The notes beneath the pieces are model-generated. The model did not search any database. It saw only the letters and a program-made list of their open reading frames with translations, and was not told where the DNA came from. From Zygnema circumcarinatum SAG 698-1b (lineage: Eukaryota; Plantae; Zygnematophyceae): 64,000 nt of DNA. The translations under genes and the position numbers were made by a program. The first letter of the stretch is position 1. The number at the start of each line of letters is the position of its first letter. This document shows positions 1,965 to 56,775 of this stretch, piece by piece. The DNA lies in contig CM074810.1 of NCBI GenBank assembly GCA_037447605.1, forward strand, positions 1,584,880 to 1,648,879, given 5' to 3'.

Positions 1965-4501
1965 ATGGTGCAGGGCCTTCCCGTCCGCCGCGTGCGGACA
2001 CGGTCGAACAGCCGCGCAAAACTGGTGCGCCAGGCGGCCGACCTAAGGGAAATGGCAAGAGGAAATTTCCTTCCTCTCACCAGCAGCAGCACCAACGGCC
2101 ACAGCCGCAGAAACTTGCTCCACAGGAGATGGAGGCTTTGCGCGCGGAAAACAAGTGTTTCCGTTGCAGGAAAGTGGGGCATAGGTCTTATGACTGCCCA
2201 TCTTTCAAGAAGGATAGGAAGGGGAAAGGGCCGGCGGAAAACGGCTCCCCACCAGCAGCTTAGGAGTCTCTGCTGGTGGGCTTGACAGTAGGGGGGGCAG
2301 CGCATTAGCTGCCATCACTAGTGTAGAATGTTATATTCCAAGGGCGGATGACATTCTTAAAGTGATTGGGGGAGTTTTCAGCGGGAATATGTTGTTGGTG
2401 TGCGATGCATTCCCTGCTGATTATTCATTGCCACCTGCTATGCTTGTGACTCCAACAGCATTTCCGAATGCTGTCTTGATGAAAGAATGGCATGTCATTA
2501 TCTTGAATGCCATGGGCAGTGATGCCTTAGTGCACTGTGCATTCGATGCCTTGCGCTTGCTGCGGTCGAAAGACCATGTACTCAGTCTGCGAGTACTGCT
2601 CCCACAACACGTGGCAGTGAAGGCTTATCCACAGACTGAGTGGAAAGTGGTAAAGCTTTGGAAGAAGGGCTTCTCCCTTCTTAGGTGGGTGATTGGAGCT
2701 TCTACCACTGTGCTGGGGAAGTCTCCTCATCCCCTTGTGTGGCGGTTAGCGCGCCCCCACGCACCGAATGTGCTACGGTCCATTTTCCACTTGTCTCATC
2801 GTGCTATGACCTTCCAGGGTTCGGCCGATGGACACTCAGCAGTGGTTTTGCTGGACACTGGCGCGGACGCTAACTTTGTTAGCGCAGCCTTTGTCAGGAC
2901 TGCGGGGTTTGCAGTCCAGCCTCATTCCGATAGTGTAACTTTCGGGGATGGACGCACGGGCCAGATTTCTGGCAGCGTCAGCGTGAAATTGAAGATTCAG
3001 TCTTACTCCGGGGTGGTCAACTGCTTGTTGACGTTATTAGCCCCAGGAACAGACTTGATCTTGGGGAGCAAATGGCTGACGCTTATGGGCGCTCAGTTGG
3101 ATTTTGTTGTCCCTAATTGCGTCCTCCGCAGTGAAGGAAGACGCATGACTCTGCAACCAGGCACTCCTTCGGGACCAGCCTCGTCGCGGTCATCTTTGTC
3201 GTTTTTGTGCTCTGCCATGCAATTGGGCAAAGCATTAAAAACGAGTAGCATCTTGTTTATGGTGCAAGTCATGACGGCAACCGAGGACGCTCATGACGGG
3301 GACCAGGAGTGGCAACCCACGGCGGGTGAAACAATGCCACTTGTCCCAACTGTGTTTCAACCCTTGTTGAAAGCGTTCGGGTGTGACGGGCTCCCGAATT
3401 TATCTGGCCAAGGGGTCTCAGCCTCTCCGCCTGGGCATACCATACCCCTTGAGCCGTAACGTAAACCTCCCCTCGAGGCCTATCTATAGGGCTTAGGTCC
3501 GGAAGGGAGACCGAGGAGATGCTTAAAAGCAACTCGCTAACTGGCGCGCGGAGAAGGGCCGGGATTGAGTTCAAATGCAGCCCCTTTGGGGCCCCATCCT
3601 CTTCGCCGCTGGTGCTAAGGATGGGTCTTTGGAGAATGTGCATCGACATCTGTGCGACCACAAGACTACTCGCAAAGAACAGGTTCTGCCTTTAATGCCA
3701 AGATAGATGATCTTCGACCTACCGCAAGGGCCAAGGTATTCACCTCGCTCGACCTTGCGCAGGGGTACCATCAGATCCGTGTCACGGATGCTGATGTTCC
3801 TAAGACGGCATTTCGGACGCCAATTGGTCACTTCCAATACAAGGTGCTACCTTTTGGACTGACCAACGCTCCGGCTACATTCCAAGCTGTGATGAACGAA
3901 ATGTTCGGCTCTAAGATGGATGAGTTTTATCCCTCGTCTACCTGATGATATCCTCGGTATTCGCGAAGATGTACGCCAACATCTGTGCATGTAATGCTAG
4001 GGTGTTCGAGGTGTTGGGCGTAAAACACACGTTTTGGCGCCGCTTTAAAGAAGTGTAACTCTCATGCAATCCAGAGTTGTTGTATCATCTTGGGCATATT
4101 CTGAATGATCAAGGCCTTCGGCCAGACCCTGCCAAAGTTTCTACGGTAGAAACTTGGGCAGCACCAACTGACTTACATCAGTTGCGATCATTCTTGGGAT
4201 TTGCGAATTATTTTCGTAAGTTTATCCAAGGCTTTAGTAGTTGGTAACACACTTTACCACTTGACACGCTCCGTGTCGCTGGCATGCATGGACACCGTGA
4301 GTGCCGCATTTGGCATTTGATGCGTGAGACATGCGCTTCAGGACAAAGACCTACGTGCTTGAGTGTTGGCTGATCCATGCATAAGTTATATGAAGTGGTA
4401 TGTGACGCTTCGGGGTTCGCTTTGGGTGCGGTCTTGTTCCAAGACGACCAACCTCTTGCTTACGAAAGTCGCAAGATGAACCCAGCTGAGCGAAACTACT
4501 C
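1965..4501 (+). mobile_element. Degenerate Ty3/Gypsy LTR retrotransposon gag-pol fragment
   Basis: CCHC knuckle CFRCRKVGHRSYDC at 2156-2197; protease LLDTGADANFVS in ORF 2362-3459; RT motifs FTSLDLAQGYHQI, KTAFRTPIGHFQYKVLPFGLTNAPATFQ and a frameshifted YLDD near 3940; RNase H CDASGFALGAVLFQDDQPLAYESRK. Many frameshifts. Both ends are N gaps. Confidence 0.9.
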
Positions 4502-5001: not shown

Positions 5002-6241
5002 GGGTAGTGATATTTCCACCCCTTTTTTGGATCCAAACACCCCTTCCCGGCCGGGCAGATTTCAAAAAGGTTTAAAAACGGAAATTGCCTTTTTCATACC
5101 TTTTTGGAATCGATACCCACCCTCCATCAGCAGATTTTATTTTTGCGAAACAAGGAAATAACCCGTCACCCCATTTTTAATATCCCGCCTACCTGAATTT
5201 TTTTTCATGCGTACGGTCAATCGCAGCCGTCGATTCCCTCGCAGATCGCAACACGGCAGATCACTATTGGATCTGCAGCCGGGCTCGGTCACAGCGAATG
5301 GCACGTGCCCACGTATCCCGCGAAACCCGTCTCAAACGTTTGTCCGTACAAATATCGTACGGTCGCAACTTTGAGGAACCCCAATATTTCGTACATTGAG
5401 AGCTTGGACCAATCAAAGTTTTCCACGTCCAAAATGTAACACGTGGCAGATGTTGATTGGCTGGGAGTTAACAATGACGAGATCTCGGGCCGAAGGACGC
5501 CCGCACTCGACTTGCGATTTGGCTTTGACGGGACTCGTGGGCGCCTTCCATTCGCTAAGATCGAGCCCGGCTGCAGATCGAACGGTGATCTGCAGTGGTG
5601 TGATCTGCGAGGGAATNNNNNNNNNNATTCCCTCGCAGATCACACCACTGCAGATCACCGTTCGATCTGCAGCCGGGCTCGATCTTAGCGAATGGAAGGC
5701 GCCCACGAGTCCCGTCAAAGCCAAATCGCAAGTCGAGTGCGGGCGTCCTTCGGCCCGAGATCTCGTCATTGTTAACTCCCAGCCAATCAACATCTGCCAC
5801 GTGTTACATTTTGGACGTGGAAAACTTTGATTGGTCCAAGCTCTCAATGTACGAAATATTGGGGTTCCTCAAAGTTGCGACCGTACGATATTTGTACGGA
5901 CAAACGTTTGAGACGGGTTTCGCGGGATACGTGGGCACGTGCCATTCGCTGTGACCGAGCCCGGCTGCAGATCCAATAGTGATCTGCCGTGTTGCGATCT
6001 GCGAGGGAATCGACGGCTGCGATTGACCGTACGCATGAAAAAAAATTCAGGTAGGCGGGATATTAAAAATGGGGTGACGGGTTATTTCCTTGTTTCGCAA
6101 AAATAAAATCTGCTGATGGAGGGTGGGTATCGATTCCAAAAAGGTATGAAAAAGGCAATTTCCGTTTTTAAACCTTTTTGAAATCTGCCCGGCCGGGAAG
6201 GGGTGTTTGGATCCAAAAAAGGGGTGGAAATATCACTACCC
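5002..6241. mobile_element. Long-TIR DNA transposon (Mutator/Foldback-like) with 8-bp TSD; interior lost in gap
   Basis: 5002-5616 is the reverse complement of 5627-6241 (615-bp arms). Termini read GGGTAGTGATATTTCC. Direct repeat AACTTAAA lies at 4994-5001 and 6242-6249. Confidence 0.8.
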
Positions 6242-6585
6242 AACTTAAATTACAAATAAAATTCAAACTTGGGGATGGCATGGCATGGGCTACATGCGGT
6301 ACTGTAGATGCCATGCCGATCCGAACACTGCCATGGACTCTCTCTCTGTACGAATACGTACGGTATCGTACGGACGAAATATTACCGTAGGGCGAAAAAT
6401 CCGGCGGGACATTATACTACATTTCTGGCCTCGCCTCCAATTTGAGCTTTCAATTTTTAGGGTGCCAGAACTGCGCAGCAAGACGATTCCTTCGCTGCTG
6501 CTCTCTCACTCTCCTTCTCTTCCTGTCTCCTACTCTCCCTCTCTCCCTCAGTCTCCCTCTCTCGCCTCTCCCTTTGAAAGCGGCC

Positions 6586-7828
6586 ATGAATAACACAGAG
6601 CTTGCTAAGGCGTTCGTTGCGCATTATTACTCGACGTTCGACCGTAACCGGCTTAACTTGATTAACCTTTATCAGGAAAATTCAATGCTCACGTTTGAAG
6701 GAAGAGAGTCGATCGGCCTAAAGGAAATTCAAGAAAAACTCTCCGAGCTCCCGCAGGAGTGTACACACGCCATAGATTCTATTGATAGTCAGCCGTCTTT
6801 TGGCGGAATGTTGGTTTTTGTGAGCGGCAAGCTTCAGCTTGCCGAACAGCAACATTCTCTGCGCTTCAGTCAGGTAAGGCGCGATTCAGATGTTGAAACT
6901 GTTACTGAATCTGTTAACTGAAAGCAAAATTACTGATGGTTTTTTTTATTATCTTTAGGATTTTTTAGGGATCTATTGCTATGGTCATGATCTCGGTGTC
7001 TGTTATCATCCTTAGTATAGCCGATTCATTTGCTAGTTTTACGGTCATCTCTATATTTGTTCAGCAGAATCTGCCACTGGAGCTGAGCGGTAGTAGTGTT
7101 GCTGAAAAGAAGTATGAGTCTTCCTGATTTGCTTTTCCTTCATGACTTCTCAACTCGTGTACTCCGCGAAATGCTGTTTGAAGTATATTTGAATGTTGTT
7201 TGAAGATTAGCGGAATGCTTTTTGAAGACTACCTGAATGCTGTTTGAAGGAATTTGCTTTTTTAATGGTATAGCAGAGAGAACTGTTAGCTAATGTTTGG
7301 TGAGATTTGATGTTTTCTGCAGCTTCACAATCCTGTTGGTTGCTTCATGCGCTCTTCTGTTATTGCTCTGTTGCAAAGATTTTATGCTATTGTAAAATGC
7401 CAAAATCTTAGCTTGACCAGTTTATATTGATCTTATTCTTTCGCTATTCAGTTCGGGTTAACTATCCAAGACCTATGCTGGTTTTTTGCTTTGAAGAACT
7501 TGTGCGTCTGTTGAAGACTGGCTCTTCAAGTAAATAATCTATTCCTTTTGTTTATCACTTCGAGAAGCAACTGGAGACGTCTCCAAGATTATTTTTTATT
7601 GGTGTTTCTTGAGCTCACGGTTGCTTTGTCATATCACACAGGATTGTGCAGTAATGACAATCTCTGTTATGGTTTGTCCTGTATGCAATCTCTTATGTTC
7701 TCTCGGTTTCTAGAGACTTTTTAATCCATGTTTCCTTTTTTTTCTTTCTGCAGATGTTCTGCCTCGTACCAACTCCAGCAGGAAGTTTTTACGTTCATAA
7801 CGACGTCTTCAGGCTCAACTATGGTTGA
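6586..7828 (+). CDS. NTF2: Nuclear transport factor 2; exons 6586-6873, 7754-7828 (120 aa)
   Basis: LAKAFVAHYYSTFD...LYQENSMLTFEG...IDSQPS...VFVSGKL...LRFSQ|MFCLVP...FYVHNDVFRLNYG*. Phase-0 GT-AG intron. Confidence 0.95.
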
Positions 7829-8927
7829 TGATGATGATGATGATGATGTGGGCATTATATCGACGTGACAGAGACTCAATGGCAGTGCAGAGAGAGTGAA
7901 GGCGGTACATGGTTTCAGAATTTTCTCATTCATAAGAATCATTCGCGGTGTTGCTCTTATGTGTCTCTAGCTTAAGATGTTTGTTTGGGCAACATGGCTG
8001 ATCCCGTGGTAGTTTTGGAACGATAGATCTATCATAATTGCGAAGTTGTGGAATCGGAATGTACTAGTAGTGTAGTGCATCTGTTAGTTACATAGCTGGT
8101 TAACTATGACCGATTATTTTTCCAAGGAGGTAGTGCCTCTCTCTCTCCCTATCTCTTGGAAGGACACGATGATGTGTTCTATGTCGCCTTGCCGGCACTT
8201 GGAGGGGTATTTTTCTCAAGCTTTTTCTCCAGAGTCAAGTCCCCCCTTGGTGGTTCCGGGAATGCTGAAGCCGGTTCAGGATGCAGGGAATTTCTCTCAC
8301 TCTCTCTCTCTCTCTCCCTGTCCCTCGTCGTCTGCCTCTTCCACTCCTTCGGCCCCGTCTGCTGCTTCTCTCCCCCTCTTCTCTTTCCCTCTACTCCTTC
8401 CCCCTCCTTTCCTCTCTCTTTTCAGTGTCCTTTGACTTCAGGGTTTTAGGTTTCAGTGTTTGAAGTGCTTCAAGGCTATGACGGGGTTATGAGACAGGCA
8501 GCTTGGTGAAGACTTCAACAGTTTAAACATAACGGAAAAATGGGCTCATGGGCTTTTAGAATGTATGAAGACAAGCGCTCTAATCTCTAGGTGCACTACC
8601 CGGAAAAAAATACCGAATTTGGGCTGTCTGTTTAGTTTTTCCGTACAATGGTTACGGTACAGTACGGGCGTAATGTACGGATGACCCTTACAAGACAAAC
8701 GGTACGGATCACGCTCGAACGGTAACAGAACTGGGCAGTCCGACATGGAAGGGTTGAATGACCCGAATTTTGCCAACGACAAGATGCAGCGTTGAACTAC
8801 AAGTGAGCGCATGGAGCGTCGCTCAAGCCAACCCTACAAGTGCAAACCCTAAAAACCCGTTCTTTCATAAAGCCCCACCTGCTCCACTCTGAACCTCACA
8901 AGGCTCATTTTCTTAAACCCTGAAATT

Positions 8928-10445
8928 ATGGCTGCCATGGCTTCGAGGCTCTCCTGCAGACCCCTGCTATTACAGAGGCAAGCTTTACCCCATTTAGTAC
9001 CGTTGCAGCTGCGCTTGACTTTATTTTCTCAGAGACAAGCGCAGCATTTCCGTCGATTTATGTACGGATTTTGTGAAACTAGGGTTCCACATAGAAACGG
9101 GCCTCGATTTAGGCTTTTAGGGTCCAGATTTTACAGAAAATTCTGTTCGCGTTCTACGGAATTGAATACGGGTACTGAAATTCGGGCACATGGAACCGCG
9201 GAAGTTCCTCCGGTGGAGGGAGGGCGAGGGGGAAGGGAGGGCGGGGCAGATTCGAAAAAAATTTACCTTCTTTTTTATGGTAAGCTTTACGGGCTTGAAT
9301 GTGAATTAAAGTTAATTCAATTTAATTTTAACAAATGCATCAAACTAATTTTTTATCCAACTTTTAAACCCCACAACGAATTACGTTGACTTAATCAAAA
9401 CCACTAAGCCACAATTTTTTAAATTGCGAATTCAACTACTAACTCAATGCAACCACATTTTTTCAGACTACGTTAAGGATGCCGCGGAACGGCGAGCTCC
9501 AATGAGAGAGCGCCACCTGGCACTCGCCCGCCAGCTGGCGGCGGAGGGCAAGCTCCTATTGGGCGGGGCCTTCAGCGAACCTCTCGATGGAGGGTGCTTG
9601 ATTTTCCTCACCGCTAATGAAAATGGTCAGATTGTGCGAACCCAAAAACCACAAACCAAAAACCAAAAACCAAAACCCAAAACCCAAAACCCAAACCCAA
9701 AAACCAAAACCCAAAACCAGAAACCCAAAACTCAAAACCAAAAACCAAAAACCAAAACCCAAAAACCAAAACCCAAAACCCAAAAGCCAAAACCGAAAAC
9801 CAAAAACCAAAACCCAAAACCCAAAACCCAAAAACCAAAACCAAAAACCAAAAACCAAAACCCAAAACCCAAAACCCAAAAACCAAAACCAAAAACCAAA
9901 AACCAAAACCCAAAACCCAAAACCCAAAACCCAAAACCCAAAAACCAAAACCAAAAACCAAAACCACCCAAAACCCAGAACCCGAAAACCAAAACTCAAA
10001 ACCCAACCACCAAAAACCACAAACCAAAAACCAAAACCCAAAAACCAAAACCTAAAAGCCAAAGACCAAAAACCAAAAACCAATTTCCCACCTTGCTCTT
10101 GATCAAGCTATGTTTTCCGACTTCTTGGTCCGCTTCATGGTAAACTATGAAACTATGAATATGAAGCCCTAAAAATCCTAAAAACCCTAAAAACCCTGAA
10201 AACCCTAATGACCCTCAATGACCCCTCCCCTCTATGCAGACATTGAAGAGCAGTTCGTCTCCCATGACCCCTATGTCCTGCACGGCCTCGTGACGTCATG
10301 GCGAATTCGAACATGGAGCCCCGTTGTTGGTTCCCTACTTCCGTTAGACTTCACCTTCACCTCACCTCCTCTTAACGGCGCGCCTTCTCTTCAAGAAGAG
10401 AAGAGAAATAATGTAAGCCGAATGGCCCTACACCCTAAACCCTGA
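8928..10445 (+). CDS. YCII/YciI-like domain protein with N-terminal organellar presequence; exons 8928-9279, 9467-9625, 10240-10445 (or 10240-10412 if fused to YicC)
   Basis: KIYLLFY|DYVKDAAERRAPMRERHLALA...GKLLLGGAFSEPLDGGCLIF...|DIEEQFVSHDPYVLHGLVTSWRIRTWSPVVGS matches the YciI-like pattern. Splice phases are consistent. The first ~48 aa are Arg-rich with no acidic residues. Confidence 0.85.
9640..10085. repeat. Degenerate (CCAAAA/CCCAAAA)n tandem array in YCII intron 2
   Basis: Imperfect 6-7-bp repeats, directly visible. They account for all the KPKT/FGFW ORFs here. Confidence 0.85.
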
Positions 10446-10593
10446 AACCGCTAAAGTCTTTCAAAAAAAAAAAAGAAAAACCGACAAAATATTGAAGCTT
10501 TGAAAAGCCACAAGCCCCAGAAATCTGAAAAGTCTCCAATGGTTAAAAAGCAGCGGTAATCTCCCAACCCCTGGTTATTAAAATCTGAAATGT

Positions 10594-13500
10594 ATGGGCT
10601 TCCAGGAGAGCAATTTGAAGCGAAGCCCGGTCTCGGGAATGACCGGATTCGGGCGAACCGAGGGGACTGCAGGACAGCTGTTCTGGTCATGGGAGGTGGG
10701 CCGTACATGCATGCAGAAAGAGAAAGATAGAGAGAATGGGGGAGGGGGAGAAAGGGAATTTGAGTGGGAGGAGAGAGAGAGAGAGAGAGAGAGGGTATAA
10801 GGAGCGACAAGGGGAGAAAAAAGTGGCGCCGGAGAGAGATGGAAAGGGGAGAAGAGGAAGGCAGAGGGGGGAATAGGGGCAGAGAAAGGAAGAGTGAGAC
10901 AAAGGAGAGAGAGGGAACGGCGGAAGGAGGGGAGGTGGGCGAAGAAGACGTTCTGGGAGGGGTGGGGAGGGGAGGGAAGGGAGGAAGGTGAGGGGGGTGA
11001 GAGAGGGGGAAAGAGTTGAAGGAAGTTGGTGGGAGGGAGTAGGGAGGGAGGTGTTGGGAGATGGATAAGAATAAGAGAAATGGGAAGTGGAGGTTGAGTA
11101 TGTGTGTGCAACGCTCCCCTGTGCGAGAGAGAGAGGGAGTGAGGGAGAGAGAGGGAGGGAGAGAGAGAGGGAGTGAGAGAAAAAGTGGAAGTGAGAGAGA
11201 GAGAGGGAGTGCGAGAGAGAGCCTCTCTCGCTGATCCGAACGATGTTGTGGGGGGCGTCTACACTCGTCACGTGCAGGGCAGGCTCGCAGTGTGAACGGT
11301 CGATCTCTCGACGTTCGGGTTCGGCTTCCGGACTCTTTTGGACCCATGCAGCAGCTCGCCACGTCAGCAGTTTCGGAACGATTTGCGAGAGGGAGCATCT
11401 CTGTCCACTTGTCAGTGAAGGTGTGGAGTCGTCAATAGTTTTTTTTTATAAAAAAAAATAAATAAATAGCGGATACCCCGATTCCTTTTTACAAGTGGGT
11501 TTTTTTTTTTTGGGCCTTTTTGGGATTGCAGGTGGACAAGGGGCAGCAAGAGAGCAAACTGAATATCAACAAAGAGGGGATTTTGCAGGTAAGAAAACAT
11601 AAAGTCGTTTTTTTATTGCTTGTCTGAAACATACTCGAATTTCCCTTCTCGCACTTCCTTGCCTCCTCTCCCTTCACCCCGTCTTCCACCCCCTCTCTCT
11701 CTCTCTCTCCCTCTCACTTCTTTTCTCTCTTTCGCTCTCCCTGTTTCCCTCTATGTTCTTCCTTTCTCTTTCGTACGCCGGTCCTCTCCTCTCTCTATCT
11801 CTTTCTCTCCCTCTGTCTCCCCCTTTCCTTTGCTGAAATTTTTTTTTTCCGTAATCTCTTTCTTTCTTCCACGATGGCAGGCAGCCGCTATGATCGAAGA
11901 ACTGCGGAATACTGATTCTGAAGGAGTCCTGGCAAAGTTCCCCCCCATAACTTTGGACTCCCTACTGAAGCTGCCGGTGAGAGTGCACAGCGAATTATGG
12001 CTAAAAAAATCTTGAAAAAAGGGATTAAACCTAGAAACTAGAAATTAGGACTATGGAACTAGAATTCTAGATTTCACGTCGAGGTTCAATTGTTAACTTC
12101 AATTTAAAACGACAAAGTCATGTCATTGGTTGCCTCTCAGGGAATGGTCCAATGGGTGGATGCGGAAGAGAGTGAGGGCGAGAGAGAGACCCACATGGCA
12201 GCTGTGACAGATAGGTATCTCCTCTCCATCTTTCATTTTCTTTCGAATGGAGTTTCTTGTTTGTAAAGGACTACTTATATAACCCTCAGTAACCCTTAAC
12301 CCTAAATACCATACACGCCTAATGACCTTCTCCATCTCCCCACTCCACCTCCCCCTCCCTCTTTCATTGGCTTTTCTTCCTCTCCTCCCCATCCTTCGCT
12401 CTCCCACACCCTATCCCTCTCCCTCCCCCCCTCCCTCTCCCTCCCCCCCTCCCTCTCCCTCCCCCTCCCTCTCCCTCCCCCCTCCGTCTCCCTCCCCCTC
12501 CGTCTCCTCCCACCCCCTCCCTCCTCCTCCCCCTCCCTCTCCCTCCCCCCCTCCCTCTCCCCCCCCCCCCTCCCTCTCCCTCCGCCCTCCCTCTCCCCTC
12601 CCCCTTCCCTCTCCTTCCCCCTTCCTCTCCCCCCCCCTTCCTCTCCCTCCCCCTTCCTCTCCCTCCCCCTTCCTCTCCCTCCCCCTTCCTCTCCCCCCCC
12701 CTTCCTCTCCCTCCCCCTTCCTCTCCCTCCCCCTCCTCTCCCTCCCCCCCTCCCTCTCCCTCCCCCTCCTCTCCCTCCCCCGTCCTCCTCCCTCCCCCCC
12801 CTCCCTCTCCTCCCTTCCTCTCCCTCCCCCCCTCCCTCTCCCTCCCCCCCTCCCTCTTCCCCCCTCCTCTCCCTCCCTCCTTCCTCTCCCTCCCCCCTCC
12901 CTCTCTCCCTCCCCCTCCTCTCTCTCCCCCTTCCTCCTCCCTCCCCCCCTCCCTCTCCCTCCCCTTCCTCTCCTCCCCCCTCCTCTCCCTCCCCCACTCC
13001 CTCTCCCTCCCCTCCCTCTCCCTCCCCCCCTCCCTCTCCTCCCCCCTCCCTCTCCCTCCCCCCCACTCCCTCTCCCCGCCCTCCTCCCTCCCCCTCCTCT
13101 CCCTCCCCTCCCTCTCCCTCCCCCCCTCCCTCTCCCTCCCCCCTCCCTCTCCCTCCCCTCTCCACCCCCTCCCTCTCCCTCCCCTCCCACTCCCCTCCCC
13201 CCCTCCCTCTCCCTCCCCTCCCTCTCCCTCCCCCCTCCTCCTCCCTCCCCCTCCTCTCCCTCCCCTCCCTCTCCTCCCCCTCCCTCTCCCTCCCCCTCCT
13301 CTCCCTCCAACCTTCCTCTACCTCCCCCCTCCCTCTCCCTCCCCTCCCTCTCCCTCCCCCTTCCTCTACCTTCCCCCCTCCCTCTCCCTTCCCCCCCCCT
13401 CCCTCTCCCTTCCCCCCCTCCCTCTCCCTCCTCCCTCCCTCTCCACTCCCCCCTCCTCTCTCCCTCCCTCTCCCTCCCCCGTCCTCTCCCCCCTCCCTCT

Positions 13501-16232
13501 CCTCCCCCCTCCTCTCTCCCTCCCCCCTCCCTCCCTCCCCCCCTCCCTCTCCTCCCCCTCCCTCTCCCTCCCCCGTCCTCTCCCTCCCCCATCCTCTCCT
13601 CCCCCCTCACCCTCCCACTCCCACCTCCCTCACCCTCCCCCCCTCCTCTCCCTCCCCCATCCTCTCCCTCCCCGTCCTCTCCCTCCCTCCCCTCCCTCCC
13701 CCCCTCCCTCCCTCCCCCCCTCCCTCTCCCTCCCCCCTCCCTCTCCCTCCCCCTCCCTCCCTCCCCCTCCCTCTCCCTCCCCCTCCCTCTCCCTCCCCCC
13801 TCCCTCTCCCTCCCCCTCCCTCTCCCTCCCCCCTCCCTCTCCCTCCCCTCCCTCTCCCTCCCCCTCCCTCTCCCTCCCCCCTCCCTCTCCCTCCCCCTCC
13901 CTCTCCCTCCAACCTCCCTCTGCCCTCCCCCCTCCCTCTCCCTCCCCCTCCCTCTCCCTCCCCCTCCTCTCCCTCCCCTCCCTCTCCCTTCCCCCCTCCC
14001 TCTCCCTCCCCCTCCCTCTCCTTCCTCCTCCCTCTCCCTCCCCCTCCCTCTCCCTCCCCCTCCCTCTCCCTCCCCCGTCCTCTCCCCCCCCCTCCCTCTC
14101 CCTCCCCCCTCCCTCTCCCTCCCCCTCCCTCTCCCTCCCCCTCCCTCTCCCTCCCTCTCTCCCTCCCCCGTCCTCTCCCTCCCCCGTCTCTCCCTCCCCC
14201 CTCCCTCTCCCTCCCCACCTCCCTCTCCCTCCCCCCCTCCCTCTCCCTCCCCCGTCCTCTCCCTCCCCCGTCCTCTCCCTCCCCCCTCCCTCTCCTCCCC
14301 CCCCTCCCTCTCCCTCCCCTCCCTCTCCCCCCTCCCTCTCCCCCCTCCTCTCCCTCCCCCTCCCTCTCCCTCCCCCCTCCCTCTCCCTCCCCCCTCCCTC
14401 TCCCTCCCCCCTCCCTCTCCCTCCTCCTCTCCCTCCCCCTTCCTCTCCCTCCCCCTTCCTCTCCCTCCCCCTTCCTCTCCCCCCCCCCTCCTCTCCCTCC
14501 CCCTTCCTCTCCCCCCCCCTTCCTCTCCCCCCCCCTTCCTCTCCCTCCCCCTTCCTCTCCCTCCCCCTTCCTCTCCCTCCCCCTCCCTCTCCCTCCCCCT
14601 CCTCTCTGTGCTTGGTCCGCAGCCTGCTGGCAGCTTTGGACCAGTTGGCAGCTTCCAGACGATCTGAGGGCGCTCGGTTGGCGTTGATCCTGGCCGTCCA
14701 ATTGGACGAGATCGCCGATCTGACGGAGGAGGCGGCAGCACAGGCAGCCAATCGCCTTGCAGCTTTGAAAGAGCGCTTTCAGAAACAAGTAAAGCTTTTT
14801 CTCTCCCTCCTCCTTCGTCTTTCTTCGCCCTCTAATCCCTTTTTTTTTTTTTTCTTTTTCTTTGGGGCCCCACTCTTGTAAGGAAGGGCATTTACCTTTT
14901 AGTCTGGTCAGTTTCGGTTTCTTGAGAAAGCTCAATAGCTGGTGAAAAGCTTATTGTTACAGCTATTGGTTTGACTTTATTAATTTGAGTTGACTTTATC
15001 AACCAGGGATCAGACTTCGTCTCTCATAGCTTTTGCTGACAGTACAGAAGGTGGGGAACGAATGACAGGTGAAGGAGTTAGTAGAAGTGGACTGCCGTCT
15101 TGATCCTGAAAGGTTGGAGATGGAGGTGGCCATCCTAGCAACCAAGATGGATGTCAGGGAGGAGGTCGGCTCTCTCTCGCTCTCCCTCTCCCTCTCCCTC
15201 TCCCTCTCCCTCTCCCTCTCCCGCTCCCTCTTTCTCTCCCTCTCCCTCTCCCTCTCCCCTTCCCTCCCCCTCTCCCTCCCCCCCTCTCCCCCTCCCTCTC
15301 CTTCTCCGTCTCCCTCTCCCTCTCCCTCTCCCTCTCCCTCTCCCTCTCCCTCTCCTCTCCCTCTCCCTCTCCCTCTCCCTCTCCCTCTCCCTCTCTCCCT
15401 CTCCCTCTCCCTCTTCCCTCTCCCTCTCCCCCTCCCTCTCCCTCCCCCACCCCTCTCCCCCTCCCTCTCCCTCTCCTTCTCCCTCTCCCTCTCCCTCTCC
15501 CTCTCCCTCTCCCTCTCCCTCTCCCACATCATCAACCCCACATATTCCTTGTTGATGACGTCAGCACATGTGATTCCTGTGGGCCATGTACCCAGCCGGT
15601 GCTTGTTACTCGCGCGTGATGTCAGCATAGCCTGTTTCCCTGGTTATTGACGTCAGCATATGTTTTGGTTTACAGGTGGAGCGGCTGCGCGTGCATATCG
15701 CAGCTGCGGGGCTCCTCGAGGGGAGGAAGGAAGGAAGAGGAGGAAGGAGGGAGAAGGGAGAGGAGAAGGGAAGAAGGGGTTCAGAAGGCGGTGCCGGTAG
15801 GACGGGCTTTGGAGTTTCTTGCACAGGAATTTGTGAGGGAGGCCAACACCATCTGCTCTAAGGTATGCATGGGGAGAGCATTATGGGTAGGATGTTGTTT
15901 TTTCGTTGATTTGAACTAAATTGGGTTTAGTTTATTTGAATTGAGTTGGTTTGAGCAGATCGAGGTCAGTGTGAACGAGGCGTACATGAGGGGGTTCAGA
16001 GTGTCCAGACATTGTGAATGCTGGGTTGCCATTTCAAAGCAGAAGCAGCAGCTTGATTCAAGGGCCACTGAAGGCTAATTTCTCGGATACAATTTAAAGA
16101 GTCTGAGTCTGACCTGCGGGTTTTTTTGCGCATGCGGCAATGCAGGCGAATGACGTCGTATTGACGCAAATCGGGCTAAAAATCAAAGGCGTGACAGAGC
16201 AATTGAGAGAGCAAGCCGCCAATGTCGAGTGA
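10594..16232 (+). CDS. yicC: YicC/YloC-family endoribonuclease (YicC_N + DUF1732), intron-containing; exons 10594(or 10606)-10695, 11283-11420, 11532-11588, 11881-11976, 12141-12214, 14623-14788, 15069-15164, 15676-15862 (1-nt frame break), 16146-16232
   Basis: [11 protein letters not shown]...WSWE|[16 protein letters not shown]...RGSI...[10 protein letters not shown]|GMV...[16 protein letters not shown]...[22 protein letters not shown]|VERLRVHI...[23 protein letters not shown]|[28 protein letters not shown]. Every YicC block is present in order, with phase-consistent GT-AG introns. Confidence 0.9.
12322..14610 (+). repeat. ~2.3-kb homopyrimidine (C/T) low-complexity tract in YicC intron 5
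   Basis: Almost pure CT repeats such as CCCTCTCCCTCCCC. This tract produces the long Pro-rich and Gly/Glu/Arg-rich ORFs. Confidence 0.9.
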
Positions 16233-17788: not shown

Positions 17789-20686
17789 ATGGCCCCGAGC
17801 AGCAGCGGAGCGGAGGAGGGCGAGCGGGAGAGCGAGGCACCGAAGGGCGGGGGAGGGCGCGCGCTGAAAGGGGTGGGGCCGAGCGTGCACGAGCTGCTGG
17901 AGTGCCCCGTCTGCATGAACTCCATGTTCCCGCCCATACACCAGGTGGGAGGGAGGGGGGGGGGAAGGGAGGGAGGGACGGAGGGAGGGAGCGAGGGGGA
18001 GGGAGGGGAGGAATTGCGTGAGGGAGGGAGAGGGAGGGAGGGGGATAATGGATGGGGGGAGGGGGGGAGGGAGGGGGATAATGTAGGGGGGGGGGGGGTT
18101 GGGGGAGGGACGTGGGGTNNNNNNNNNNTGTAGGGGGGGGGGGGGTTGGGGGAGGGACGTGGGGTTGGGGGGACAGGAGGAGGGAGAGGGGGTAAATGGA
18201 GTAAGGGAGGGAAAAAAAAGCGTATGTGGAAATGTGGAGAATAGCGTTTGGATTTTCTTCCAATTTTTTTGTTCCAGTAGTCGTCAAGTGAATGTCTAAT
18301 GCTGAGCCAATAGTTTGGGAAGATTATTCTTTCTTTACCCTCCTTTACTTTCTCTCTCCTCTTTGAAATCCCTCTTTTTCTTTATTTCATCTCGCCCTCT
18401 CTGTACTCTGAAGTTTTTACTATCTTGAGTCCCCCTTTACCCTCTCTTTCTACTCCGAAATCCTTCCCTTCACCCAACCCTCTAGTCCCTTCACTCTATT
18501 TCCAACCACCCTCTCCTCTTAGACCCTTAACTCTTCCCCTCATGCCCCTTTGAGCCATTCTATACCCTACCTCGCCCCTACTCTTACACATCTTCCCTCC
18601 CATCTCCCTTTCCCCGCCCACCCTTCCCGTCTTCTTCCACTCCTTCCCCCTTCCCTCTCTCCCTCCTTACCCATCCTTCCCTCCCCCCTCCCCGTCTCCT
18701 CCCTCTCTCAACCATGCCCTGCCCCCTCCCCCTCCAGTGCCCCAACAGCCTCTTCAAACCCCTACATTCTTAACCTTACATCTCCTCCCTTTCCACGCTC
18801 CCCCACCCCCCTCTCTCCCTCTGCCCTCTCCTTCGCATCCCCACTCTCCCTCTCTCACCCATCGTCCCCATTTGCCCCATCCTGTGCCCCAACGGCTTTC
18901 CAAACTTCCGTCTCTCCTTACGCACCCTTCCCACACTCCCTCCCTCTCCCCATCTCTCACCCTTCTCCCCCCCCTGCCCCCTCCAGTCTCACCTCTCCCC
19001 TCACACATCCCCCCCTCTCTCCCACCTCCCTCCCTCCCTCCTTCCCTCCCTCCCTCCTTCCCTCCCTCTCTCACCCAACATCCCTATCTGCCCCCTCCAG
19101 TCTCACCTCCCTCCTCACACATCCCCCCCTCTCTCCCACCTCCCTCCCTCCCTCCTTCCCTCCCTCTCTCACCCAACATCCCTATCTGCCCCCTCCAGTC
19201 TCACCTCCCTCCTCACACATCCCCCCCTCTCTCCCACCTCCCTCCCTCCCTCTCACCCAACATCCCCACCTGCCCCCTCCAGTCTCACACACTCCCCCCT
19301 CTCTCTCTCTCTCTCACCTCCCTCCCTCTCTCCCTCCCTCTCTCACCCCGTCTCCCCCCTCCCAGTGCCCCAACAGCCACACCCTGTGCTCCCAGTGCAA
19401 GGCGCGTGTGCATAACCGCTGTCCCACGTGCCGCTTCGAACTCGGCCACATCCGCTGCCTCGCACTGGAGAAGGTCGCGGAGGCGCTCGAGCTGCCGTGC
19501 CGCCACGTGGCACAGGGCTGTACGGAGATCCTGCCGTACTACTCCAAGCTGCGCCACGAGGCGCTCTGCCCCTTCCGTCCGTACAGTTGTCCGTACGCCG
19601 GCTCAGAGTGTGCCGTTACGGGGGACATTCCGGCGCTCGTGGTAGAGGCAGGGAGGGAGGGAAGGAGGGAAGGGAGGAGGAGGGGAGGGAGGGAGGGAGG
19701 GAGGGAGGGAGGAAGGAGGGAGGAGGGAGGGAGGAGGAAGGGCAAACCAGTTTTAAACCAGTCCTAAAATCCTTATAATGCGTAAAGTCCTTAAAGCGGG
19801 TATTGAAGGTCGGCCTCTTGCAGGACCATCTCCGCGACGAGCACAAAGTGGATATGCACAATGGGAACACCTTCAACCACAGATACGTCAAACACAACCC
19901 GCAGGAGGTGGAGAATGCCACCTGGATGCTCACAGTGAGCCCTCCATACTCTTCACGCAAAGACTTCATGCACGAGAGAGAGAAGGAGAGAGAGAGAGAG
20001 GGAGGGGGGAGGGGAGAGGGGAAGGGAGAGAGGGAGGGAGTGAGGGGGAAAGGGGGGATGGGGAGGAGGGCAGGGGGGCACAAGTGGGCAGGAGTGGCAG
20101 CAGGAAGCGGGTAGGAAGAAAGGGGAAGGTAGGAGAGGAGAAGACAAGAAAGAGAGGGAAGTCGAGAAGAAAGAAGAGGTGAGAGGATATGTGATAGATA
20201 AGCGAGAGGGAGAGAGAAAGGAGAGACTGAAAGTCAATCTACACTCACCTAGAATCCCAAAAGTACTTAGTAAAGTATATCCATTCCTCTAATGTAGCCC
20301 ACTGATTCAAGAACGTCCCGCCTTCGGTTTTTCCTCTCCCTGAAGGATTCTCATTTTTCCTCCCCCTGCAGGTGTTCAATTGCTTCGGGGAACATTTCTG
20401 CCTACACTTTGAAGCGTTCCCTCTCGGAACTGTTCCCGTTTATATGGCGTTTCTCCGATTTATGGGCGATGATAAGGAGGCTAAGAACTACAGTTACAGC
20501 TTAGAGGTGGGAGCTAATCGACGGAAGCTTGTATGGCAGGGGGTCCCTCGGAGCATTAGAGACTCTCACAGGAAAGTGAGAGATAGTCAGGACGGTCTCA
20601 TCATTCAGCGGTCCATAGCTCTCTTCTTTTCAGGTGGGCAGAAAGAGCTCAAACTCCGAGTTACTGGGAAGATATGGCGGGAGTGA
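17789..20686 (+). CDS. SINAT: SINA/SINAT RING E3 ubiquitin ligase; exons 17789-17944, 19366-19641, 19824-19934, 20372-20686
   Basis: VHELLECPVCMNSMFPPIHQ|CPNSHTLCSQCKARVHNRCPTCR...RCLALEKVAE...CPYAGSEC...|DHLRDEHKVDMH...ENATWMLT|VFNCFGEHFCLHFEAF...YSLEVGANRRKLVWQGVPRSIRDSHRKV...ELKLRVTGKIWRE*. All introns are phase 0. Confidence 0.97.
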
Positions 20687-55230: not shown

Positions 55231-56775
55231 ATGGCCCTCTCCCTCCGCCAAGATCCGTCCCTTCTTTCTCCTTACCGTCCCGAAAACCTCTCCCTCGTCT
55301 CCTTACCTCACTCCTCTCCCTCCCACACCTCTCCTTCCCGCAAACCCCTCTCTCTCCCTTTCCTCACTATCTGCGCCCGCCGGACCCCCAAACCCCCTCC
55401 TTCCTCCCCTGCCAAAAATATCAATAAGGAACTTTCCGGGAGGACGGGAAGCTCCCGTGAACCTCCTTCCGCTCCCTCTCCTCCTCCGAGTCGGAAAACG
55501 GCGACAAGCGCTCCGGCTCAAGTCAATGCAAGTCAAGTCAAGTCTGTTCAAGTCAACGAAGAGCAGGAGCTAAAGGGAGCAACTGTCACACAGGAGCTTC
55601 CGGTACGAGCCGGTGTTTAACTTTCCTGAATTGTTCTCTCGCTCTCTTTGTCTCTCCCTCCCTCTCTCTCTCTTTCACTCTCTCCCTTTCCCGCTCCACA
55701 TCCTCCCCCCACCTCTCCCTCCCTCTCTCTCCTTCTTCCTCTCGCCTTCCCTCTTCCTCTTCTCCTCTCTTCCCATCGCCTTCCCGCTTGTCCTCTCCCT
55801 CAGCCTCCCCCTCCTCCTCCTCCCCCTTTCCTCTCCCTATCCCTCTTCCTCTCCCTCTCCCTAACCCCTCTCTACCATTGGAGCGTAACATCACACAGTC
55901 CCCTCCACTGCAACTTTTTGTTGTTTTCCTGACTTATTTTCTGTAATCCTTCTAACTTGTACCCTTTTTCACAACTTCCCCTCTTTTGATTCATACTTTC
56001 ATACAGACGGGCGGATGGAATTTGAAGTCTCCCGTGACCATGGGTGCCGGAGTCGCCGCCGCTCTCCTTGTGGCCGGCGTTACGTTTCGGCTTATTAAAT
56101 CCCGAACGGAGACTCGGCCCGTGGACACTCTCACTCGGCGAGGACTGCTGTACACCGATAGGCAGGAAGAGTAAGAGATTTTTACTCTGAAATAAAAAAA
56201 GAAAAACCAAGAAGAAAACAGAAGGCTTGAGACTTGAAAATGTGATGATGTTTCAGCAATGCATTTTGTGTCTAGATGTAGGAAGGTGATCCTGCATCGA
56301 TTTCGTTTGAGCTGAGAATGATGATGATGATGATGTTGATGGTGTTTTAGAGGTTCTTGGCTTTTCAGAAATACTTGGAGCTTGANNNNNNNNNNNNNNN
56401 NNNNNNNNNNNNNNNNNNNNNNNNNNNNNNNNNNNNNNNNNNNNNNNNNNNNNNNNNNNNNNNNNNNNNNNNNNNNNNNNNNNNNTGTCGATGTTTGTTT
56501 ACGAGTTAATTAAACTCTTCGCTTAATTGCATATTTATTCATTTATTAATCGCCTTCCTATATTCATCTGTTGCTTCGTCCAATTCTTTGTCTGCTAGTA
56601 CTGCTCTGGTTATCTATCCATGCGTCCATTTCTACATTTCTTTTGTCCTAAATTCTTTCTTTTCAATTCGTTTGTTTTCCCTGTGCAGGTCTCTGATGAA
56701 GCTTCCAAAGCCCAGCAGCAGCAGCAGCAGCAGGAGGAGAGCTCGGACGGGAACAAGAATCCAAGCGAGGAATAA
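55231..56775 (+). CDS. Hypothetical plastid-targeted single-TM protein; exons 55231-55602, 56007-56170, and a last exon from 56689 (possible exon lost in gap 56386-56485)
   Basis: Ser/Pro-rich transit-like N-terminus; phase-0 splice into TGGWNLKSPVTMGAGVAAALLVAGVTFRLIKSR (TM plus basic flank); canonical GT-AG sites. The frame of the 3' exon is unresolved. Confidence 0.6.
56386..56485. other. 100-N scaffold gap (10-N joins at 1101, 1955, 4502, 5617, 18119, 23259, 31464, 33382, 41992, 44511)
   Basis: N runs, directly visible. Confidence 1.

Follow-up and report, generated by a model that had tools for sequence, protein, structure and literature searches.

A candidate twelve-exon nuclear gene for a YCII-YicC fusion protein in the alga Zygnema circumcarinatum

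The DNA analysed here is a 64,000-nucleotide stretch (the window) of contig CM074810.1 of Zygnema circumcarinatum SAG 698-1b. We propose, with a probability of about 0.8, that positions 8928-16232 of its + strand form one nuclear gene of 12 exons, whose product would consist of approximately 109 N-terminal amino acids (aa), a YCII domain, a linker of approximately 35 aa, and a complete endoribonuclease of the YicC/YloC type. All 12 exons could be assembled on the + strand with GT-AG at every boundary, and the predicted product is approximately 536-557 aa long. The full model is a clean open reading frame (ORF), the sole irregularity being a frame break within exon 11. Exons 1-3 supply the N-terminal residues, the YCII domain, and a 27-aa tail, and the remaining exons supply a complete YicC-family protein. 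Approximately 237 extra N-terminal residues (presequence, YCII, and linker) precede the YicC part; two introns interrupt the YCII domain, and eight fall within the YicC part. Judged from the comparisons given below, a fusion of YCII and YicC in a green-lineage alga is very probably real.

The fusion depends on a proposed linker intron at 10413-10605. The YCII ORF (frame 0, 10212-10442) ends at a TGA at 10443-10445, and the YicC ORF (frame 1, 10582-10797) contains an ATG at 10594, which lies 148 nt past the stop and 15 residues before MTGFGR. The initial annotation had pointed to the closeness of the two ORFs and to the short YicC N-terminus, and had proposed a 193-nt intron between them; the positions that it gave were found to be exact. 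In the YCII frame, a codon ends at 10412 (..GAG AAG AGA AAT AAT) and GTAAGC begins at 10413, 33 nt before the stop. In the YicC frame, TTCCAG ends at 10605 and the GAG at 10606 begins a codon. The intron is therefore of phase 0 at both ends, and its removal joins the YCII and YicC frames. The in-frame stop would lie inside it, as would two ATGs, one at 10590 (out of frame) and the one at 10594, and we consider it highly likely that the stop and the ATG at 10594 are both intronic.

The splice sites were scored with donor and acceptor position matrices, which were trained on 28 other introns from the window gene and its two relatives, L002 and L003. Within 10300-10640, position 10413 was the top-scoring GT and position 10606 was the top-scoring AG exon start. 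Equally good scores were reached by approximately 5% of all GT and approximately 4% of all AG in the window, and approximately 0.05 equally good in-phase GT/AG pairs are expected in the linker. The GC content over the 193 nt was 0.40, compared to 0.51 and 0.60 in the flanking exons, which is in line with the other, AT-richer introns of the gene. A YCII protein ending at its own stop would have a 37-aa tail, which is not present in bacterial YciI-like proteins.

Support for the junction came from the two relatives, of which L002 is a Logan genomic contig and L003 is a 38-kb JGI metagenome contig; both are eukaryotic. Four matches were obtained in an exhaustive representative search with the 55-aa exon 14623-14788, and only P0002 was useful. 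P0002 is an ORF of L002 that loses its similarity exactly at ..KERVQKQ|gt, the intron site of the window, and it led to L002. P0004 and P0005 from the same search were set aside, since they look like frameshifted bacterial genes. P0007 on L003 was found by searching with the fusion-exon ORF of L002. The order in L002 is as in the window, with a YCII exon, the YCII C-terminal half, and the YicC exons. A single L002 exon (7687-7928) is free of stops and introns from ..DFVSQDPYVAGGLVTSHRIRPW across a 30-aa linker to ..ISSMSGFSKVDG..WSWE|gt, and a single L003 exon (6616-6992) carries the YCII C-terminal half, an 85-aa linker, and the YicC N-terminus. In both relatives, the junction exon enters YicC via ..ISSMSGFS.VDG..WSWE, followed by gt. 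By our own arithmetic, the chance of stop-free in-frame spacers of 30 and 85 codons in both relatives is approximately 0.07 x 0.006, or about 4e-4. Linker residues are conserved between L002 and L003. Moreover, the spliced linker of the window (..QEEKRNN|..) aligns with the continuous linker of L003 (..SEEKRAEPSLLARISSM), and the EEKR motif, which adjoins the donor in the window, is also found in the L003 linker. The 10412^10606 splice, which the initial annotation expected to give presequence, YCII, linker, and YicC in one frame, is thus supported by comparative evidence, as the junction lies within a single exon in both L002 and L003. Only this in-frame splice would let the window make a protein of the L002/L003 type.

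With the exception of the linker intron, the comparable intron positions and phases were common to all three genomes, and L003 has one extra intron, which lies between the halves of window exon 11. The shared introns include a phase-1 intron before ..YV.., a phase-1 intron in the middle of YCII, and the sites WSWE|, ..VK|, and ..LQ|; a 74-nt phase-2 exon and a 166-nt exon ending QKQ| are shared as well, as are the sites REE| and CSK|. The window and L003 match at every listed intron, and the L002 contig ends after QKQ|, the last two sites (REE| and CSK|) being beyond it. The initial annotation had held that relatives with unfused genes only would speak against the fusion; L002 and L003 both encode it. 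Since the fusion junction is continuous in the relatives and the introns are shared, we infer that the fusion predates the split of the lineages of the window, L002, and L003. No match was obtained when protein references (lengths of 145-462 aa) were searched with YCII exon 2, or when metagenomes were scanned with the fusion exon.

Exon 1 (8928-9279) begins at an ATG in a favourable context (aattATGG) and encodes approximately 109 aa and then the first YCII strand (..KKIYLLFY), ending in phase 1 at TATG|gtaagc. It gave no Pfam match, as expected for a presequence. Exon 2 (9467-9625) carries the first YCII half, including the His of a His-Asp pair (..RERHLALA..), and the homologous exons of L002 and L003 have identical phase-1 introns on both sides. 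It matched PF03795 with an E value of 2e-4, and the score of exon 2 alone was 22.2 bits, below the cutoff of 24. Exon 3 (10240-10412) carries the second YCII half (..SHDPYVLHGLVTSWRIRTW..) and a 27-aa linker segment ending ..LQEEKRNN. Over 89 aa, the spliced YCII domain (92 aa in all) shared 57% of its residues (E 8e-37) with P0009, a PF03795-bearing YciI-like protein from a Vicinamibacteria bacterium. The nearest solved structure found for P0009 was 1MWQ, HI0828 of Haemophilus influenzae. Via P0009, the His (RERHL) and the Asp (HDPYV) of the window align with REQHL and QDPYV of HI0828, which we take to hold the His-Asp pair of that protein. A His-Asp pair is described for the YCII family (PMC7641849). 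Compared with the 57% identity to the bacterial protein, the identity of the window YCII to its algal orthologues in L002 and L003 was 45-48%. The YCII domains of L002 and L003 carry a 5-aa deletion. It seems that the lineage of L002 and L003 has the faster-evolving YCII part.

The N-terminal extension of approximately 109 aa is basic over its first half. Acidic residues are absent from positions 1-49, and the first 50 residues include 7 Arg and 10 Leu, with Ser and Thr together numbering only 4. L002 and L003 likewise extend in frame upstream of the YCII fold. It is plausible that these residues form an import presequence and that the protein is targeted to an organelle. The mitochondrion would be a somewhat more likely destination than the plastid, given the alphaproteobacterial type of the YicC part and a putative presequence with much Arg and Leu but little Ser and Thr.

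The YicC part starts in exon 4 (10606-10695), which carries the end of the linker and the YicC N-terminus and is followed by gtgggc; this is the WSWE|gt intron common to L002 and L003. Exon 4 gave a weak match to profile positions 2-22 of YicC-like_N (PF03755), and exon 5 (11283-11420), which holds the equivalents of N28 and R30, matched the same domain with an E value of 6e-10 (40 bits, cutoff 25) and was 64% identical to the L003 exon. The YicC middle region is encoded by exon 6 (11532-11588), whose boundaries are common to L002 and L003, and by exon 7 (11881-11976), which ends ..LLKLP|gtgaga. Exon 8 (12141-12214) is 74 nt long with a phase-2 end, identical in length and phase in L002 and L003. 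After an intron of 2.4 kb (12215-14622) follows exon 9 (14623-14788; 166 nt), which encodes the YicC cap region and was 60% identical to bacterial YicC P0001 and 55% identical to the L002 exon P0002, with an identical intron site. Exon 10 (15069-15164) begins the C-terminal domain and contains the catalytic Glu pair (..MDVREE). Together with exon 11 (15676-15862) and exon 12 (16146-16232, with the stop TGA at 16230-16232), it covers profile positions 21-51, 68-92, and 93-120 of YicC-like_C (DUF1732, PF08340), with E values of 1e-4, 9e-9 (on the second part of exon 11), and 2e-3, respectively. Exon 12 was 61% identical to the last exon of L003, and the C-terminus ends ..LREQAANVE, like those of bacterial enzymes.

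When a 64-nt tract in exon 11 (15721-15784) was omitted, and only then, residues 1-299 of the YicC part aligned end to end with a Kiloniellaceae YicC (48.7% identity over 300 columns, E 2e-71). Mutagenesis of Escherichia coli YicC has identified M5, N28, R30, E216, E217, F244, R251, E252, R280, and E281 as residues each required for cleavage, the glutamates serving catalysis and the arginines RNA binding (PMC10793500). In an alignment made via P0001 to PDB 8VER, all 10 were present in the window; the nonessential R211 is replaced by Lys. By these alignments, both the YCII and the YicC domains are full-length homologues of bacterial families.

Three introns of the gene consist almost wholly of microsatellite. 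The intron at 12215-14622 is nearly all a CT-rich tandem array of 16-nt and 6-nt units (12399-14606; 2.2 kb, 16-nt unit), and the other two hold 356 bp of CTCCCT (15170-15525) and 440 bp of CCAAAAA (9642-10083). Telomere-like CCCTAAA variants were seen at approximately 10165-10210.

The window is eukaryotic nuclear DNA, with a spliced NTF2 gene, a SINA-type gene, and a retroelement fragment, all on the + strand. The NTF2 gene (6580-7828; Pfam E 5e-24), the upstream same-strand neighbour, ends with ..FRLNYG at 7825. The gene for a SINA/SIAH-type E3 ligase (19779-20683; Sina TRAF-like domain, E 6e-36) follows the YicC stop at a distance of more than 3 kb. Neither neighbour was found on L002 or L003, so wider synteny was not seen. 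The fragment of a long terminal repeat (LTR) retrotransposon polyprotein (2218-3942) has aspartyl protease and reverse transcriptase domains and is interrupted by stops. The segments 5162-5436 and 5807-6081 have identical translations on opposite strands, which represents an inverted duplication of approximately 275 bp around a 10-N run (5617-5626). Runs of 10 N occur ten times in the window, which also has a single 100-N gap (56386-56485).

Several observations weigh against a functional fusion gene at this locus. Compared with the other introns of the family, the donor at 10413 (approximately 6 bits) and its acceptor (5.6 bits) are among the lower-scoring sites. Protein-reference searches, limited by length and word filters, gave no transcript or annotated protein matching the locus. 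The linker position is intronless in both relatives, so either the window gained an intron or the other two lost it. The organelle targeting is predicted from N-terminal composition, any role of YCII in the RNase is speculation, and the frame break in exon 11 means that this copy might be defective. One rival reading is a gene fission, in which an ancestral fusion gained the stop at 10443 in its linker and YicC is now expressed from the ATG at 10594 as an untargeted cytosolic protein beside a targeted YCII. A stop and an in-frame ATG are indeed both present between the domains, L002 and L003 are without an intron at this place, and a junction-spanning RNA was not found in the protein-reference searches, which cannot exclude one. 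However, a poly(A) site, a promoter, and a 5' untranslated region would then have to fit into 148 bp, whereas in the neighbouring gene pair the end of the NTF2 gene and the ATG at 8928 are 1.1 kb apart. The ATG at 10594 has a poor context, with a pyrimidine (T) at -3, and is overlapped by the upstream ATG at 10590; the ATG at 8928 has A at -3 and G at +4. Moreover, the best donor and the best acceptor of the region restore the ancestral frame, and the linker is coding-like up to the donor and has EEKR in common with L003. A fission is therefore improbable, and a single spliced gene is preferred.

The fused gene may nevertheless be a recently disabled allele or a pseudogene in this genome, in which a +1 break within 15721-15784 would truncate the protein ahead of the segment with F244, R251/E252, and R280/E281. 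As assembled, exon 11 consists of a part in frame 1 and a part in frame 2, which are split by 64 nt of pure purines plus GTTCAG, and read-through meets a stop at 15859-15861. The initial annotation did not note this break. A genuine break would cost the protein its last approximately 55 residues, four essential ones among them. Omission of the 64 nt restores the frame and the YicC colinearity; however, no canonical splice removes the tract as assembled, since an intron there would begin with GG, and its acceptor has a score of -3.7. Splicing from 15691 to 15785 would be canonical and would keep the frame, at the cost of ten conserved residues, and its donor scores -6.4. In L003, a true intron of approximately 0.9 kb lies at this place, and with the best-scoring acceptor of that intron (10.1 bits), L003 would have a loop insertion of approximately 19 aa. 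Given the GG donor, the acceptor of -3.7, and the similar-sized loop implied in L003, a short GG-AG intron is less likely, and the tract is most likely a coding loop rich in Gly, Arg, and Glu with a one-base miscount, in the assembly or in the organism. One-base miscounts in purine runs such as this 64-nt run are a common assembly error. Furthermore, the two exon parts past the break are open to the normal C-terminus of the family, with 73% and 52% identity to bacterial YicC and 61-62% identity to L003, which argues against an old pseudogene, and no other defect was found in the 12 exons. We regard a disabled copy as rather unlikely. Bacterial contamination, or a very recent non-functional bacterial insertion, would agree with the bacterial type of both domains and with alphaproteobacterial proteins as the nearest YicC sequences found. 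The gene structure refutes it: there are eleven introns of spliceosomal type, several of them filled with the microsatellites typical of the window, their positions are common to two other eukaryotic contigs, and the locus lies between the eukaryotic NTF2 and SINA genes. The probability of such an origin is close to nil.

The origin of the two parts of the fused gene was considered by searches of bacterial sequences. Among GTDB species genomes, the exact motif SVNGRSLDV picked almost only Alphaproteobacteria, and all genes obtained in metagenome and GTDB scans with the exon that carries it were bacterial yicC genes free of introns. When exon 14623-14788 was used in a word-index search of long stop-free references (259-823 aa), a single bacterial YicC, beside gmk, was the only match. 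In a quick tree, the YicC parts of the window and L003 formed one clade (SH-aLRT 99) inside the sample; the sequences of this tree were pattern-selected and almost all alphaproteobacterial, so it cannot distinguish between an alphaproteobacterial and a cyanobacterial origin. An alphaproteobacterial source of the YicC part is thus a lead. In none of 91 bacterial loci (80 from genomes and 11 from metagenomes) was a YCII gene found within 6-10 kb of yicC. The inheritance of a YCII-yicC pair from a bacterial operon was rejected on this ground, and the fusion looks like a eukaryotic invention. The yicC genes of metagenome-assembled genomes labelled Acidobacteriota in GTDB (L035, L075, L082, and L092) nest in the Hyphomonas clade with near-identical sequences, and these look like mis-binned contigs.

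Bacterial YicC is a hexamer held by its middle cap, and its N- and C-terminal jaws clamp an RNA hairpin, which is cleaved in a Mg2+-dependent manner (PMC10793500). By analogy, the algal protein may lose its presequence after organelle import, assemble via the YicC cap into a hexameric clamshell, and, like its bacterial counterparts, use Mg2+ to cut structured RNA of the organelle. Six YCII domains on flexible linkers would then be found at the clamshell's N-terminal jaw end. Hypothetically, the tethered domains could form pairs that span the jaws, or take up a small ligand at the His-Asp pocket, and thereby influence opening, closing, substrate choice, or cleavage. We tentatively suggest, as a possibility still short of an even chance, that YCII is a working partner of an RNA-cutting machine, either as a ligand-sensing gate or as a second catalytic step on RNA ends, and that streptophyte-type algae run an organellar YicC pathway without a described eukaryotic counterpart. 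If so, the fusion would serve as a "Rosetta stone" for YCII proteins, which have lacked a known function for approximately twenty years.

YicC has been recognised as a ribonuclease only recently and is treated as a bacterial family in the papers found. In full-text searches, the YicC/YloC literature dealt with bacteria only, and eukaryotes, plants, and organelles were unmentioned in the text-searched YicC-family papers. Chloroplast literature matching YicC had no YicC in the main text where examined, YicC was not found listed among organellar RNases as far as our literature searches reach, and YCII was paired with YicC nowhere beyond gene lists. The view of the initial annotation that this architecture is undescribed agrees with these searches, and within their reach the domain architecture and the host domain of life for YicC are both new here. 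A spliced nuclear YicC conserved in at least three algal genomes would add an enzyme family to eukaryotic, probably organellar, RNA metabolism, and a covalent link between YCII and an RNase would offer a lead that can be tested for a domain that is widespread but functionally almost unassigned. The locus would also be a clean example of a fusion hidden from gene finders by a linker intron, because the stop and the new ATG both sit inside it.

The closest known systems to the YicC part are E. coli YicC, Bacillus subtilis YloC, and Clostridioides difficile CD25890 ("RNase CS"; PDB 8VER, 8VES, and 8HVJ). The window gene resembles them in having both Pfam domains in order and approximately 300 colinear aa, and it keeps the features of the bacterial YicC family, namely the MTGFGR start, SVNxR, the EE pair, LxF..QEFxRE, and the LREQ..N(I/V)E C-terminus. 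Unlike the bacterial genes, it is nuclear, intron-bearing, and N-terminally extended, and it probably has a loop insertion of approximately 20 aa before the QEFxRE helix. Organellar RNases that descend from bacteria and are encoded in the nucleus include RNase E, RNase J, PNPase, and YbeY in plastids. The proposed gene is like these in that a bacterial-type RNA-processing enzyme is encoded by a nuclear gene with an N-terminal extension; however, it comes from a different family, and its localisation is predicted from N-terminal composition. Compared with the YciI-like/YCII proteins (HI0828, PDB 1MWQ; the dehydrochlorinase TftG), the window shares a domain of approximately 92 aa and, by alignment, the His-Asp pair, whereas its YCII domain is not free-standing but lies between a presequence and an RNase and is interrupted by two introns. 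In bacteria, YciI is fused to a sigma-70 domain (Caulobacter) or to BolA (Coxiella), and an alphaproteobacterial operon encodes TsaD, GpsA, YciI, and EVE (PMC7641849). As in these cases, YCII in the window would be an accessory module joined to, or encoded beside, a nucleic-acid-related protein (PMC7641849); the partner here, however, is an RNase, and the fusion is eukaryotic.

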